DNA of 39,993 nt from Calcarisporiella thermophila CBS 279.70. Lineage: Eukaryota; Fungi; Calcarisporiellomycota. Below, one piece after another: positions 27,111-37,323 of the stretch (position 1 is its first letter; the number at the start of each line of letters is the position of its first letter). The DNA is taken from NCBI RefSeq assembly GCF_041956535.1, contig NW_027192205.1, positions 266,468 to 306,460 of the forward strand. The letters run 5' to 3'. The notes below the pieces were generated by a model, which saw only the letters and a list, made by a program, of their open reading frames with translations, made no database searches and was not told the DNA's origin. Both the position numbers and the translations under genes were made by a program.

Positions 27111-30100
27111 ATGAATGGAACCTCACGAGCACTAAATGATAGAAATCGACGGGCCAAGGTACGTCTACGAGTGTTGGTTTAGAAGTAGGAGTTCGTGGTT
27201 GATTTGTCTGTTCCTTGTTATAGCTTTCCGCTGATTATCAAGAGCTTCTTGCCAAACTTTCCAGCCCAGATGTGTTTATGGTTGGCAATTATACCCTTGA
27301 TAAAACAATAGGTGAAGGTATGACTTATCATGTTGGCTCATAACACGCTCAGACATCTTACCTGACAATATGAAGGATCCTATGGCAAAGTGAAGCTCGG
27401 CTTGCATCGTTTAACCGGTCAAAAAGTGAGATTAGATCTCCCTACCCTGGATCATCGCTTATCTAATGTACCCCTTTTGTATACCAGGCTGCCATCAAAA
27501 AAATCTCAAAGCGTCATGCCCCACTCATCACTCGCGAAATCTTCCATCACCAACGTTTAGAACACCCAAATATTGTTCGCCTGTTAGAGATTCTCACTAC
27601 AGAAAATTATATTTATGTTGTGACCGAGTATTGCCCAAACGGAGAACTCTTCGACCATTTAATTGACAAGGGACGAGTGTCCGAGCGCACAGCACAGCGC
27701 TGGTTCCGGCAGCTTTGCAGCGCGGTGAAATATTGTCATGAGTTGAAGGTCGTGCACCGGTAACTAGGCTTCGTCGGCAATTTTTCTCTGCTACTCAGCG
27801 ATAACTTTGTTTCTCTTTTTTTTTTTCCTTTTTTTTCTTTCCTTAGTGACCTGAAACTGGAAAATATCTTGTTGGACGCAGATATGAACCTAAAGCTTGT
27901 GGACTTTAGCTTTAGTCGCGAGTGTGAGAGCCGACGAATGCTTGACACATTTTGTGGGAGCGTGGCCTACGCTGCTCCTGAAATGATAAAAGGACGGAAA
28001 TACTCTGGCCCAGGTGAATCCCCCCCGAAGTGCTTTGGATTCCTGGATGGCTATTAATCTCCTCCACTCATTTTGTTAGAGGCGGACATTTGGTCCCTTG
28101 GCGTGATTCTGTACACGTTATTATGTGGATATCTTCCTTTCGATGATGATGTGGAGGCCAACATTCACGCACAGATTCTTTCACTGGACTATGAGCTGCC
28201 AGAATTCTTAACCGAGGGTAAGCGAGCCTGCGAGTATAATTTGACCTGCTAAAAATAACCTTCTTGGCCGTATTTTATTTTGTTTTCCATATATATCAGA
28301 GAGCCGGGATCTCATCTCTCGTATCCTCAAAATTGAACCCAGTGAGCGCATCACCATGAATCAAATCATGGCTCACCCTTGGCTACAAATGAAGCTCTCG
28401 AGCAGAGTGCTGGGGGTCAATGGGGGCGATGATACTGAATCTTGCTGTAGCCGCCGAAACTCCACCTCCTCTAATCGATCACATACCCTCCGGCGAAGCT
28501 TGAGTAGCGATCGCATGAAGAAGCAACACGCACGATACCCTACCATTAGCCAACCCTCTCCTGCAGAGACAAACAGGGGGCTTTTTTCTCCCACGGATAC
28601 CATGACGTCGCCCCCATCCTCCGCCACATTTGCCGGTCTTGTTAATGGTGTGGGCGATATGCTAACGCCAACGGGAACGGGGCTCTCATGGCTGTATGAT
28701 GAAATCCCGCCCACGCCCATCTTTCCTGGTAACTTGAAAGAGCAACACTTGATTGCTTCGCTGGCAGCAGCAGGGCTGGATGTCGCGACAATCACACAGA
28801 GCGTGCGCTCGCGCACTTCAGACCCGGCTAGCGGGCTGTGGTATTTGCTGCTGGAAAAGGCGCAAAAGGATGATTCGAGCGACGAGAATGACCCATGCTG
28901 CCCACCCCCGCCCTCCAACGGTGCACCCCTATCCAAGCTGGACTTCAGGGAGGAAATGGAAGCGATGGGGCGAAGTGAGGCCGAGCAGACCTCGGTGGAG
29001 TACAGCGCGATCCCTCCAACCTTGTCGCACCGTTCGGCCCCTGCAACCCCCAATCCTAGCTTGCCCACCTCTCCAAACCCGCCGCTTACCCCACGCACCC
29101 TTAAGTTTACCTCTATGTTTAATAAGCTTCAGCAGTCCACGACCAAGGTTGGCTCCCCCACCTCACATCCACTGATGCATCGCAACAGTAAAGATGGTGG
29201 GCCACGGACCACCTCTGAGGTCGGGGTTGGTGCTGGGGCCAACCACTGGTTTACTTCTCTAAAATTCCTCTGGAGCCGTGTCGGGACCGATCGCCCGCGA
29301 TCGCTTGACATTGGTTCGCTTACTGGCAACCCGAAACGCGGTACCCCTGGAAGCGGAACCTCTAAGGTGAAACGAGCAGGCCATCGTCACCACCGCAGCT
29401 TGAGTGATAGCATGAAGGGCCTGCCCAAGGAGCAGATGCTGAGCTGGCTGTCCGACGGAGAGGAACAAAAGCAGCAGATCGGTGGCCTGAAAAATGCCCT
29501 TGCTTCGGAACAGCCGGGCGCTAATGCCCTAATTTCAGCCAAAGGCTCCCCGCCAAAACAGCAGGTGAATGAGGAGGCAAATAAGGGTCCCCATCCGCCC
29601 CCAATGTCACCGCTTCCTTCCTCTAGAACGATACCTTTATCGGCCGTTGAGTTGCGATCCCCTACCTCAACACCGCTCTATCATTCGTCCTCCTTTGGTG
29701 CCCGGAGGCGTAGTCTTCAGCTAGTTGACCATAACACCGCGAGTGAGAATGGAAGCCGTAGTTCTTCTACCGGTGCAGAGGCGAATGCTCCAGCGAGGAG
29801 CGCCGAGGAGAAGCAGGGTTTTTCACGAAACATTAAAGGCTTAACGCTAAATGGCCTTGCCACGCATAGTGCCAATGGAGGAGAGGGGGCAAAAAACATC
29901 CTCCATGGAATTCAGGTTCTTCGGAGGGCAGCCACACTGGACACCGCGGTTCGAGATGCATACCGGCGTGACACTCATCAGAAAGGGCAGGCACAAGGCC
30001 ACACGCTGGAGCTGATGTCTGAGAAAAATGACAGCCACCAGCCGAAAACACCCCCTGCCGCGATCACAAGCCATCGAACATTTGTGGAGGACAACACCAA

Positions 30101-30824
30101 GATGAGCGGCTTCAGGCCCCAGCTTCGGACGTCGAGTTCCGACTCGAATACTAGAGAATCGGATAAGACCCTCAGGCCTCACTCACACCCTCAAGTTGAG
30201 AAAAGAGCCGAAGCTCAAGCCAACTCCAAAATGGGGATGGCTATGACGGTGCAACGGGATAACACGGTGAGCAATAGCGAAGCGACCTCTCGCCCTTCCC
30301 CTACTCATAGTACCATCCCAGAGCCTTCATCGCCAGTCTCCTCGGCCTTAACGTCCCGGAATACCAAGTCCTCCAGCCCCTCTTCCAAAACTGCAACCTC
30401 GGTCGTTACAAATGCTATTGGCAATGTTTCCCCGCAGCGGCGAAGGGCTAACTCGCTGCAGCGGCGAGCCAATAGGAGCGCCAACCTGGATTCTATTGGA
30501 GAAGAATTGGAGAATAGTTCGCCGTCTCGTAATAATAACCAATTGCGCAACGCAACCAGAGAGCCTACCCAGAATCACCAGACACCCCGCCCCAATATGA
30601 CCAAAGTTAATGGAAGCGTGGAGAGATCCTCGTTTGGTCGACATCGTAGTGGATATTCATCCTCCCCCCTCAAACAATCGTATGCATACAGCCAGCACAA
30701 TGAGAGACGTGTTGAGGCCGGCAAGGGCTCCTTGGGGACACGGAGACGGGCGACAGTGAATGGTGGAATGGGAATCGGGCGGGTCATCCTAGAGGAGGAA
30801 GAAGAGGAGGAGGGGGAGGAGTAA
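27111..30824 (+). CDS. CAMK-group Ser/Thr kinase (MARK/AMPK-related, Ppk16-like) with a long disordered C-terminal tail
   Basis: Spliced kinase domain: [48 protein letters not shown] (DFG variant), [25 protein letters not shown]-like helix bundle [12 protein letters not shown]...GLWYLLLEK. Last exon about 28300-30824. Confidence 0.93.
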
Positions 30825-31351: not shown

Positions 31352-32780
31352 ATGGACTATCTCAAGGTAAGCAAAGTAAAAGCGGCTTTTCATTTGGACG
31401 ATACATCCAATAAATACCATTCCTATATGCATGCCGCCTCCTGACCAGGATGTGTACTCCTTGTTGAAAGGGTGTACTCTTCTAGGTATCCCATTTCTCT
31501 TGTTCTCATTCAGCCGGGGCTGATGTAGCTAACGATGGATTATTTTCTTGTGGTTCGGTGACCATTGCATTAGTCTTGAAATCAACCAAGCTCTCCATCG
31601 ATTACTTGGTGGGTGGCCAGGTTGTTCGCCAGGGCTACTTTTCTTCTCTCTTCGCGTGTGCTGGACGCTCCTTTCTACGGCGTCGGAAAAATGCCACCGC
31701 GTTTGTGCTGAACCTCTACTTTTTCCTCGACACAAGACTCGCCTGGTTTATCTGGCCGAATTCTTGGACCCACTGGATAAAAGAACGGGACTTCCGAGGG
31801 CACTGGATTCAAAAGAGCGGAGAAAAAGCGGATATCGCCATCCTCTACGCACACGGTAGGGTGGCGGCCGTCCCGATTCTGAATAAAACTCCCCATATTA
31901 ATGTCTACATTGGTCTAGGGGGCGGGTTTATCTACGGCCATGACCTTATGTGGATGCCTTCCTTTGTTGCATGGATCCAACAGATCAAGAAGGAGACGGG
32001 GAAAAACGCGGCCATCCTTAGCCTAGAATACCGCAAGTGTTTTGGTGTAGGGAATCTTTCTTTGTTTTCTGTGCTAAGAGTCTATCCTTACTTTTTAGCG
32101 CTTGCTCCAAAACGAATCTACCCCACTCAGCAGTTGGAGTATTTGGCCGCCTACGACTATCTACTACACCAAAAGCAGATCCCAGCGGATAAACTCATAT
32201 TCGGTAAGGTTTCTGGTTATTCCCATTCCCACTACGCGTAGACTCATCCGTCTCTCCCCCGCCCCCCCGTCATCCCATGTCAATAATAGCCGGGGATGAC
32301 GCGGGAGGGAATCTTGCACTTTGCAGTGCCCTCAAACTCCACTTTAACCTCGAGCATGAACTTGAGAATGCGACTCCCTTGCCCGCGGCTCTCTTCCTCA
32401 TCTCCCCCTGGGTCAACATGGCCCATGTCTCCCGCTCGATGTACCAAAACTTCGGCTACGACTACCTCTATCCACCCAGCCTCAACCAGTGGCGCGACAC
32501 CTATCTTCCAAAAGGGTACTCCTATCTCGACACCGATGCTTCCCCACTCCACGCCGCCAGCTTCAAAGGGCTGCCCCCCACGCTCCTTGCTTTCGGCGGG
32601 CTGGAGGTGTTCCATGATGACTTGGTCATGCTTGCCAGGCGTCTGCGGGATTCCCGAGTGGGGGTTGACGTGTGGCTCGAGGAGAAGGGCATCCACGATT
32701 TTTGCCTCCTGATGCGGAGGGATGTGCACCGTGGGGCGGAAAAGTTGACCAAATTCATCAAGGAGTACGTGGGTTTGTAG
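31352..32780 (+). CDS. Alpha/beta hydrolase, HSL/abhydrolase_3 (Say1-like) family, with atypical GDDAG nucleophile motif
   Basis: After splicing: ILYAHGGGF, LSLEYPLAP, IFAGDDAGGNL, LISPWVNM, SPL, PPTLLAFGGLEVFHDD, GIHDF. Predicted short first exons MDYLK and DVYSLLKGCTLL. Confidence 0.88.
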
Positions 32781-32983: not shown

Positions 32984-33956
32984 CTATGACCAAGCGTAGT
33001 ACTCCTTTGGCAGCACACAGACGGGCGCCGTGAACACGGAATTTAACACGTCCTTGCTATCGAAATAAAGAGAGGAGTTGGCTTCTCTTCGTTTCACATC
33101 AAGCAAACTCTGCCCCCTCTTCCCATCTCCAATTACCTTTCTCCCCCTCGCACCTGCACCACCAGCCGAAACCAGCCGCCCATCCGTACCCCGAGCGACG
33201 GAAAACTGAACCGCAGGCACTCTCCATAAATGGACTTGGTCACCTCCGCCTTTGCTAATCGATCCCCCACGAGGAGATCGACATCTTTATCTGGTATCTT
33301 CTCGTAGATGGGATACCCGCTCACGTTGGCAGCATAGACATAGGCCATAAGCCCCTCGGCAGCCTTCTCCAAGCTACTTAGAAAAGGGGAGAAGAGCCCT
33401 GTTAGTTCCTAGGAGGGGACCAGACAATAGGATAGACGCAGGGTCTCTCCTCTCCCACTTTCCTCCCCGGTAAGCAGGAGACATTCGAAGTGAGGGTGAG
33501 ATCCTGTTAGGTTCTCTACTTTACTCTTTGACAAAATTCCCCTTGTCATCTATCGGCGAACAGAAGATAACCAGGGGCGACTGCAGCTTGTTTGTGTCCG
33601 ACACTTCGTCCTTTTCTTGGAGCGCGAGGCCAAAATTGGGTTGCTGGGCAATCTGAAGCCAGTAGCTTATCAGGATGAAGAGAGGTAAGCAAAGGTAAGA
33701 GAAAACCACCCGCCAGAGGGAGAGCTCAGCACACTGGGGGAGAAGACACTTACTAATAACCCATACTTCACAAGAGGAGACTCTGCATAATATCCCTGGG
33801 GGAGTAGTTGGTATTTGGCGGAAGTCGAGCAGGATATCAGAAAAAAATAGAGGTGGGTTGGAACCAGGGAGGAGGAGGGAGGGGTCATCAGGGCGCTATT
33901 ATAACTTTTCCACTGCATAGCGGCCGGGATTACGTCTCTACCGCTTGTTCATGCAT
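32984..33956 (-). CDS. Velvet-like domain protein A (about 164 aa, 5 exons), highly divergent
   Basis: Exons 33956-33942 (uncertain), 33795-33767, 33665-33525, 33373-33137, 33056-32984. YWLQIAQQP, LLVG, FSFPSLGVRMGGWFRLVVQV and VLNSVFTAPVCV match the velvet pattern YxLxxxQQP / FxFxDLSVRxEGxFRL / LAxVxSxPFxV. Confidence 0.72.
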
Positions 33957-34503
33957 GAAAACAGTGCCGTTCCGGATTAGGTTCTTGTAAGAGGATGACG
34001 AAAGCGGCCGTGAGAAATAGGGAGCCCTCGCCGAGAGATCCTCGAGGAGAGATCTAAACGAAAAGGTGCCGGCATCCGGGGGAGGAGGGACAAGACATGG
34101 AATGGGTCAGCGCTAAGATGGGAGCGGAGTCGAAAAAGAGGGTTACTCGCCATCTGCGAAGTTTATATTGCTGGGGAGTGCGCGTGATATCACTTTGGAT
34201 TTCTATTTTATTTCTGTTCTGTTTTCCCCTCGTAAAGGCTGTTCAGAGTTTTTTTGGGGACACTCGCATGCACATGTCAAACTGAACACAATAAAAGGAA
34301 AACAGCGGATGAAATGCAGGCATTAGACAATAAGAAGGAAACACCGGAATGACATGGAAAAGCATGGAAAGAACATGAAGAGACATGAAAAAGTAAACAC
34401 AACCAGTCCATCAATAAATAAAACAAAAGAATGAGATGAGATACAAGGCTGCTGTCGTTGCAATAAAGTTCAAGCACCCTCTGGAACTTCCTCCCACACC
34501 AAA

Positions 34504-35272
34504 TCACGGATGAACGTAGACGCTCTCCGTCCAAACGGTGGCGACGGGCTGGCCTGGTCTAAACCGAGAAAGATAAAAAAAGGGGGGGGGGCTAAGACGA
34601 TTTGCCAGAAAAAAACAACTAGGGAGAATAAAGCCCAAGCAAACGTCAAGCTACTAACACCTCTCTCCAATAGAGCCCTATTTGGAGCGTATAATAGCCG
34701 GCCTGCCGCATGCAAAGCTCCTCGAAGTAAAAATAGGCGCTCTCGCTATTATACACGTCGCGGAGCACCCTGGCGTTGGCGGAGCGAGTCCCAAGTATCT
34801 GGCTCTCATCCACCATCGAGCCATCGCTCCTGGTCGCAAACACATACGCGTACAACGGGGCCGTGTACGAGACTAGATTTCTGTGGGTTGGTTTGAAAAT
34901 AGGCTTCAGAGCCGTGCGGTTGGGCCACCAGCATCATCGACCAAACAATTCCACATGGCTTTACCTTGTAATGACTTCTCCGGCCTGATCGAGCGGGTGG
35001 CATTGGACAATCAGCGACTCTCTGAGCTTTGTAGTCGGTGTAGAGAGGAGAGTCCGTATCAGCCATCCCCCCACCATACTCTGGCTCTCAGCAAAACAGG
35101 GGACCCACCTTGTGCGTCTTGCTCCAGCCGTCATTGTTGTAAATAGCAGAGCCTCTAGTAGGCTGCTGAGAGATGGAGAGCACGTACCTAGACTCCCAGA
35201 GGGAACAGAATATATGAGTGGCAGCTCAAGTCCCAACTGAGGGTTGGAATTAGGCCTCATTCACCTTGACAT
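34504..35272 (-). CDS. Velvet-like domain protein B (141 aa, 5 exons), tandem paralogue of A
   Basis: Exons 35272-35265, 35187-35109, 35026-34965, 34880-34659, 34558-34504 give MSRYVLSISQQPTRGSAIYNNDGWSKTHKLRESLIVQCHPLDQAGEVITRNLVSYTAPLYAYVFATRSDGSMVDESQILGTRSANARVLRDVYNSESAYFYFEELCMRQAGYYTLQIGLYWREVPGQPVATVWTESVYVHP*. A further upstream exon is possible (acceptor near 35340). Confidence 0.78.
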
Positions 35273-35775: not shown

Positions 35776-37323
35776 TTATCCTCGAGTATATCGTCGCCGT
35801 CCGCTTTCTACAACGGGTGGCTGAGGCGTGCCGGGAGTATCCTTGGGCGTGCTCATCAACGGGAGCCTGCGCCTAGCCACTTCCACCACCACCTGTCGCT
35901 TCTCCAGATTCTCGCGGCAGCCATCGCCACAGAACCAAGGCTCATCGCCCTCCACGACTTCATCGGGAATCCTCCCTGAGGGGCAGCATGATTGGTGGAA
36001 TGCCCTTGGGCAGCCTTCGCACCTCACAAGCACATCGCCCTCCCAGGATTCGCGTTTATGGCAAGCGTAGCAGAAGAGTTGGAGCACGGGTCGCTCGCGG
36101 TCATGGATATTCTCGTGGGTAAATTCGGTCAGATCAAGCCGGGGGAGCTTGCAGACGAAGCCGTAGCCCTTGTAGTCGCATCCGTGTTTATTGCAGAGGG
36201 TCCGCTTTCCCCACGGCCCGGGGCGCCAATTGACCCCCTCCGTGGTTCCACAGTATCGGCACCAGTCTCGCTTCTCTCGTGTGAGCTCGGAGTAGAGGGT
36301 GTTGGGCAGTTTGGTAGGGCGCGGGGGAACTTTCCTACGGGAATCGACCCTGATCGGGACCGACTCCGGGCTCGAAGAAGGAGGATGGTTGTAAACGGGA
36401 AGAAGGGATGGAACTGTCCTGACCACATTTGCGTCCTCCTTTTCGGGCTGGCTTGCTTCAGCGTCTTCCGATTCCGCTTCTTCATCCTCGTCGTCCTCCT
36501 CCTCTTCTTCTGCATCAGCCTCCTGCTCACTCTCTGATTCTAAACTCTCCAGGTGAAGCTCGCCGACGCTGGCCGAACCTACCACACTGTTATTCGCAGC
36601 CCGTTGTTAGGATCAATGGATGCCAGGAGCTTTAGACGGGTTGATCGCTTACCTTAGGCCTTCATCTTCGCCCGGCACCGTCCAAGCGGTATCACTTGGA
36701 AGCAGGTGGGCATCGAACGTCAACTCATCCAAGTACTCTTCTTCCACCGATTTACCGAAAACCTCCGATTCCTCGCTCAGCTTTACTGGATTCAACGAGG
36801 CCTCCGCTTCACCATCCGTTCGCCGCCGTTTGCTCTCCGAGTCGGACCAGTCCTCCATCGACCTCTTCTCGGCCCGCACGGCGTTCTCCAAAAACTCGAA
36901 CATGTACATGTCGGGGGCCTCGTCGGGAGAGTAGGGCGGGGAGAGGGAAAGATTCTCCGTGCCACTCTCGCTGTTGTCCGTCTCCTCGGTGGCAAATGTG
37001 GCGGGAGTAAAGAACTCTCGATCGGCGCTCGGCGGAGGGGTGAAGAAGACGTCGTTCAGCAGGGTCTCTGTGTCGCGGAGGGGCTGGCAGGCAAATGTGA
37101 TGGTGGAGTTGGAGAGCGTGTGGTGGATGGGGGAGGAGCTGGGGAGCGAGAGGTGCGGGGGGAGCCCGAAATTCGGGACGTAGGCTTGTGAGCGCAATGG
37201 CGAGAATGCAGGTTGGGCAGGGTAGAAGGGGGAGACAAGGTGCGGCGGGTACATGGGGGAGCGGCCATGCTGGTCCCGGGAGGGCGCAGCATAAGCCGGT
37301 AACCAGTGGGTAGCAATGACCAT
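35776..37323 (-). CDS. GATA-like zinc finger plus PHD finger nuclear protein, 2 exons
   Basis: Intron 36652-36587 joins the two ORFs. CRYC-x18-CNKH with WRPGPWG (GATA-like). PHD CYAC...CEGCPRAFHQSC...WFCGDGC. Acidic tract and KRRR NLS-like motif. Confidence 0.88.

Follow-up and report, generated by a model that had tools for sequence, protein, structure and literature searches.

Two neighbouring genes of Calcarisporiella thermophila CBS 279.70, here called A and B, are members of the velvet family as judged by profile and predicted fold, and together with three further genes of the same genome they make up a previously undescribed variant of this well-known family. Velvet proteins control fungal development and secondary metabolism via combinatorial dimers. 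From their predicted sequences, A and B fail the three-motif definition of a complete velvet domain, as they contain only its core. The five short proteins are referred to below as minis. The gene models are public and three of the five minis already carry the Pfam Velvet mark; what is new is the five-gene core-only clade and its association in a cassette with a GATA/PHD gene. Genes A and B lie within a window of 39,993 nucleotides (the whole stretch of DNA that was analysed) on contig C15, and positions are those of the window unless a contig is named.

Gene models and velvet identity

Genes A and B are neighbouring spliced open reading frames on the minus strand, with 77-151-nt introns of the GT..AG type and no internal stop, which bears out the two adjacent genes described in the earlier note. 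Gene B is predicted to encode 141 aa in five exons with intron phases 2,0,2,2. Its first exon (35265..35272) consists of 8 nt only, bearing the ATG and leading into the split codon of Met-Ser-Arg; an 8-nt first exon is common to the paralogues on contigs C2, C5 and C27, as the public annotation also shows for two of them. Exon 2 (35109..35187) encodes beta1 and loop A, the degenerate DNA-binding region, exon 3 (34965..35026) encodes beta2, exon 4 (34659..34880) beta3-beta6 with velvet motif 2 and the conserved glycine of VelB G240, and exon 5 (34504..34558) the last beta-strand and the stop, without motif 3. The phase-0 intron before exon 3 is private to B and to the C2 paralogue, which also ends at the same residue as B.

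The best predicted model of gene A encodes 153 aa with intron phases 2,2,2 and an uncertain 5' exon. The preferred exon 1 (33754..33764) starts with the ATG at 33764 and is followed, after the donor GTAAGT, by an 88-nt intron. Exon 2 (33525..33665, 141 nt) encodes beta1, an acidic loop A and beta2, exon 3 (33137..33373) beta3-beta6 with motif 2 and the conserved glycine, and exon 4 (32984..33056) the last beta-strand, a short tail and the stop, again without motif 3. Options with a single 5' exon range from 151 to 202 aa, among which 153 aa is preferred because of its donor quality, its intron size and the analogy with the four paralogues. None of them gives the 164 aa formerly proposed for A, while the 141 aa proposed for B was recovered. 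The predicted splicing of both genes relies on splice signals, paralogues and profile fit; introns 2-3 of A and 2-4 of B were also recovered independently, by spliced alignment with a profile built from canonical velvets alone. The public model of A (VTP21DRAFT_2711, 209 aa) starts at 33918, its first exon being longer and its intron 2 different, and that of B (VTP21DRAFT_2712, 148 aa) is devoid of exons 1 and 2. Both genes had thus been called previously, as uncharacterised proteins, from models that are partly wrong. The earlier description of the genes as hidden holds only in part, since both already have public models, each of which differs from the model put forward there.

The proteins align end to end with 46 of 138 positions identical (33%), as previously claimed, and their local score of 149 is far above that of 2000 shuffles (mean 27, maximum 52). 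The conserved motifs quoted formerly are all present in A and B.

Database searches were run exon by exon, the joined spliced models being used in local scripts only. Whole-protein searches and folds used the public models: the fold of gene A includes about nine extra residues owing to the intron 2 of its public model, and the C2 sister of gene B stood in for B in whole-protein folding. Exon 4 of gene B matched Pfam Velvet (PF11754) with 29.6 bits, over the cut-off of 25, and exon 3 of gene A with 16.6 bits (E 0.008), which alone is below it; the paralogues scored 26.9-77.1 bits. The top solved structures found with a profile from four mini exons were VelB, VosA and VeA. A word search with exon 4 of gene B found no match, the query being too short to reach full-length kin. 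For A, the AlphaFold model (residues 52-209 of the public protein) has a pLDDT of 90 and is best matched by VelB (Z 16.4, rmsd 2.4 over 144 residues). The model of B's sister (pLDDT 94) is best matched by VosA (Z 15.6), to whose residues 14-158 it aligns. Compared with these two crystal structures, as the earlier note had suggested, A and B's sister respectively display the Rel-like seven-stranded beta-sandwich. Below the velvets, NF-kB came next at Z 10-11, and NFAT, Runt and STAT were also matched. The folds partly depend on the sequence assignment, because the input alignments contained velvet sequences. Pfam, profile matches and models are concordant on the velvet identity first proposed from motifs, and the stand-alone minimal architecture is supported as well, the minis having 140-161 aa and no flanking regions.

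Lost and retained parts of the velvet domain

All five minis stop 0-8 residues from the last beta-strand and thus lack motif 3, whose pattern PG..ST.LS..F..QG includes VelB L331. Loop B and the C-terminal helix and strand are absent, the L331 equivalent is missing in 5/5 minis and the G240 equivalent is retained in all. A hidden motif-3 exon near the minis was ruled out, since a motif-3 scan found none at any of the four mini loci; four controls scored 22-59 bits. The equivalent of VelB R71, an arginine in 14 of the 16 canonical paralogues of the genome, has been replaced by Leu in A and by Ser in B (L/S/S/Y/Y across the five minis). Depending on the register, the R80/R81 positions are T-N or N-K in A and T-H or H-K in B, the pair being gone in A and, in B, reduced to His/Lys; the R71/R80/R81 cluster is found in neither. 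Loop A contains two to three lysines or arginines in the minis versus four to seven in 15/16 canonical genes. The positions of the beta3 dimer face are hydrophobic (Met, Tyr, Tyr in A; Tyr, Tyr, Phe in B). The earlier note considered A and B as a pair and overlooked that motif 3 and the arginine cluster are lost, that the genome has three more paralogues and that the minis are linked to GATA/PHD genes.

The function of these parts is documented for VelB and VosA. R71, R80 and R81 are required for VelB function (PMC13389560). The VosA residues matching this cluster are needed for DNA binding, VosA without the basic residues of loop A still dimerises, and VosA residues 161-190 are unseen in the VosA-VelB crystal (PMC3876986). 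G240 is needed for every VelB pairing and L331 only partly for that with VosA; loss of the L331 region impairs the VelB-VeA and VelB-VelB pairings and VosA function (PMC12077163).

Because the arginines are lost while the fold, the G240 equivalent and the hydrophobic beta3 face are kept, a role as partner or decoy appears the most likely one. We tentatively favour the reading, to which we give a little less than even confidence, that the minis are non-DNA-binding partners of full-length velvets. With the retained sheet as interface, they would bind some of the 16 full-length proteins and, once paired, would weaken or redirect the DNA binding of these proteins as decoy or modifier subunits. With its acidic loop A, A would be the clearer decoy case, B keeping a small basic patch. 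Several features argue against such a role. Of the VosA dimer-face residues F136 and F145, both are lost in A (Arg and Val, respectively) and only F136 is represented in B, as Tyr. The end of loop A has remained basic in B (K-x-H-K) and C5 (R-x-K-R). Furthermore, since loss of the L331 region impairs several velvet pairings (PMC12077163), the minis may be altogether unable to dimerise with canonical velvets.

The same basic ends of loop A would suit proteins that still bind specific DNA sequences through a changed loop A of new specificity, either as homo- or heterodimers of minis or as Runt-like monomers. The constant length of the loop (17 residues), its conserved Gly, Ala and Asp in 5/5 minis and the resemblance of the fold to the DNA-binding domains of Rel, Runt and STAT point in this direction. 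The R71 equivalent is however gone from all five minis, loop A is net acidic in A and C27, the whole-domain net charge is -1 to -3 and there is no activation tail, so that this second explanation, although the next to be considered, is unlikely.

The mini family and its GATA/PHD neighbour

The 28-Mb assembly of C. thermophila contains 21 velvet loci, many of which lie in close pairs; 16 are complete and five are minis. The minis besides A and B are encoded on contigs C2, C5 and C27 (140, 155 and 161 aa, respectively). The five form one clade (support 100/99) in which B groups with C2 (100/97) and A with these two (99/92). Gene B is 51% identical to its C2 paralogue versus 33% to A; an AU test did not reject A and B as sisters (p 0.105). 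In a tree with limited references and a weak backbone, the minis are a long-branched clade of their own outside the VosA-like and VelB-like groups of the genome, which agrees with the previous placement outside VeA, VelB, VelC and VosA proper. Their deeper placement seems unsure because of the long branches. Velvet clades number 21 (PMC10845976), and a position outside the four classical ones is therefore not unusual in itself. Among the full-length paralogues, one VelB-like gene (C15:679645-680292), whose sister on C7 is a normal VelB-like gene, has motif 3 and a loop A without basic residues; its product is possibly a second kind of decoy.

The three phase-2 introns previously put forward as evidence for a duplication of the pair are indeed shared by A and B, but they are family-wide. 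The intron after beta2 is found in all 21 velvet genes, the intron preceding the last strand in 13/16 canonical genes and an acceptor at the start of beta1 in most canonical genes; the introns after beta2 and before the last strand also occur in Basidiobolus. They consequently indicate velvet ancestry and no special pair, and were rejected as proof of a pair-specific duplication. The coding span between the first two phase-2 introns, exactly 141 nt in A and B as had been reported, fails as duplication evidence too, since the same span occurs in the C2 and C5 minis and in two canonical genes. The A-B adjacency is still most simply explained by an old tandem duplication, given the topology (A,(B,C2)) and the lack of A in the C2 segmental copy.

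Directly upstream of gene B, at 503 nt, is VTP21DRAFT_2713 (35776..37323, minus strand), a gene for a protein with a GATA-like zinc finger and a PHD finger, whose 5' end may lie further up. A paralogue of this gene is found directly upstream of the mini at all four mini loci, on the same strand and at a distance of 503-1385 nt, the other neighbours within about 5 kb being mostly dissimilar. The genome has seven GATA/PHD copies, three of them without a velvet inside the 10 kb examined, and not one of the 16 canonical velvets lies at the contig position of a copy. In the GATA/PHD tree, the C15 and C2 copies are sisters (100/97) and the four velvet-linked copies are grouped at 97/55, which is not firm; this tree agrees with that of the mini-velvets. 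The constant adjacency and the concordant trees suggest that the two genes were duplicated as a cassette. The core of the GATA/PHD family is about 60-75% conserved over Mucoromycota and Zoopagomycota and uncharacterised in all records seen. The numbers of velvet loci and of GATA/PHD copies hint at repeated segmental or whole-genome duplication in the lineage.

The minis might be partners of the adjacent GATA/PHD protein, the velvet core serving as a subunit, either non-DNA-binding or co-binding, in a regulator that reads chromatin, and the two genes being kept as a functional module. Such a partnership would fit the invariable position of the GATA/PHD gene amid differing neighbours, the agreement of the gene trees and the absence of any canonical velvet so positioned. 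A single ancestral adjacency followed by segmental duplication nevertheless accounts for the linkage without function. There is no velvet neighbour at three of the seven copies or at four loci in foreign fungi (one paralogue each, a small sample), and the mini loci have no shared promoter motif above trivial ones. We regard this partnership as rather improbable.

An ancient GATA/PHD-velvet cluster was rejected as it is missing from the same small sample of four foreign loci, and a fusion of the two genes was rejected because every GATA/PHD gene has its own conserved end and stop and every mini starts with a separate ATG exon. Two other fungi have a KIF21A-like kinesin gene and a BMT5-like gene after the GATA/PHD gene, a conserved microsynteny that was not seen around the C. 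thermophila copies examined.

On the other side of the pair, an alpha/beta hydrolase gene (31558..32780, plus strand, start approximate) is convergent to gene A. A paralogue located after the C2 mini marks the segmental duplication between C15 and C2. The nucleophile elbow of the hydrolase in the window (32290-32315, plus strand) reads GDDAG instead of the normal GDSAG of the C2 paralogue, and the enzyme may thus be catalytically altered. Further features were observed in the surroundings. An 822-codon open frame at 28356-30824 (plus strand) has no Pfam match. Just past the right end of the window, all six frames are open over about 1250 codons at C15:306000-310300; over some 115 nt this region matches the end of the window in inverted orientation, and it is possibly a masked or repetitive element.

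Trees and gene order can be accommodated in a simple locus history. One ancestral mini-velvet would have been placed behind a GATA/PHD gene and the resulting cassette duplicated. In one copy, a tandem duplication would have produced A and B, and a later segmental duplication would have given rise to the C2 locus, in which B and the hydrolase were kept and A was not. This history bears on the proposal of the earlier note that A and B form a dedicated heterodimer. Both genes are adjacent and co-oriented, both proteins have the G240 equivalent and the beta3 aromatics, and velvet proteins do heterodimerise. The adjacency however follows from the tandem origin, identity is limited to 33%, C2 as the sister of B has no adjoining A, C5 and C27 are single and nothing supports this pairing specifically; the proposal is accordingly judged improbable, even more so than the GATA/PHD partnership.

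The sequences carry signs of selection. Between B and C2, dN is 0.41 and dS 1.28; between C5 and C27, dN is 0.37 and dS is saturated. That dN is well below dS between sisters indicates purifying selection and argues against decay. That the minis are decaying remnants or unexpressed pseudogenes, as very long branches and the lack of a close relative among 1.84 billion proteins could suggest, is most improbable: all five frames are intact and have canonical splice sites, first and second codon positions are conserved while the third are close to saturation, and complete folds were predicted with confidence.

Relatives and significance of core-only velvets

C. thermophila is sister to the remaining Mucoromycotina (PMC10079182). 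In the exhaustive profile search of these 1.84 billion proteins, only the genome's own minis scored >160 bits, followed by two Basidiobolus proteins (59-63 bits), then by an agaricomycete group and ordinary velvets; the mini clade thus appears so far to be known from C. thermophila alone. The best outside matches, ORY07644.1 (170 aa) and ORX89783.1 (196 aa) of Basidiobolus meristosporus, resemble the minis in having no R71 equivalent and the same phase-2 introns. ORY07644.1 also ends early, its motif 3 being broken off by a stop, and is a genuine velvet and apparently a parallel case of truncation, whereas ORX89783.1 retains a degenerate motif 3. Both differ from the minis in that identity is only about 28-37% and no GATA/PHD neighbour was seen, and they are weakly grouped with the minis (91/76). 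Agaricomycete velvets with a degenerate loop A (Tulasnella, Heterobasidion, Lactarius), probably Bas-Velvet3 of PMC10845976, likewise have the R71 equivalent replaced and are near the minis in the tree, at a support under the starred level, but they differ in retaining motif 3 in a modified form and, for the most part, a long N-terminal region. The link of the minis to the Basidiobolus and agaricomycete proteins may be due to long-branch attraction. The same size and apparently the same core-only architecture are found in many velvet-like clusters of 125-170 aa in the ESM Atlas, which come mostly from Ascomycota and are called 'Velvet domain-containing' or hypothetical. They were the top matches by model features (0.92-0.94), and their TM of 0.60-0.70 is weaker than that of full velvet (0.83-0.88), the comparison being by features and structure alone. 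The core-only build is therefore probably not unique to C. thermophila.

With VosA and VelB of Aspergillus nidulans (PDB 4N6Q, 4N6R), the minis share the seven-stranded beta-sandwich, the scaffold of motif 1 (QQP...L.P), motif 2, the glycine G96/G240 and intron positions typical of the velvet family. Unlike them, they have no motif 3 or C-terminal helix (L171/L331 absent), a lost or reduced R71/R80/R81 cluster and no regions flanking their 140-161 aa. MicroProteins and Id-type dominant-negative partners are small relatives with a single domain, in which an interaction surface is retained and the contacts with DNA are lost. The minis are likened to them by analogy only. A literature search of incomplete coverage found no relevant paper on truncated, dominant-negative or core-only velvets. 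Both kingdom-wide velvet surveys retained complete domains only (PMC10845976, PMC12077163), which has left core-only velvets uncharted.

The reach of the present observations is limited to one little-studied species, similar short forms being apparently widespread in databases. Within it, the five minis are a natural deletion series, which asks if a velvet protein can fold and pair without motif 3 and the arginine cluster, and they raise the question of built-in velvet inhibitors in fungi. It is conceivable, although we consider it unlikely as a whole, that core-only velvets form a decoy class, multiplied here as a two-gene module with GATA/PHD to tune a large velvet network, and that the minis of C. 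thermophila and the short velvets of Ascomycota belong to one overlooked inhibitory layer. If true, this layer would be comparable for velvet proteins to what Id proteins are for bHLH factors.
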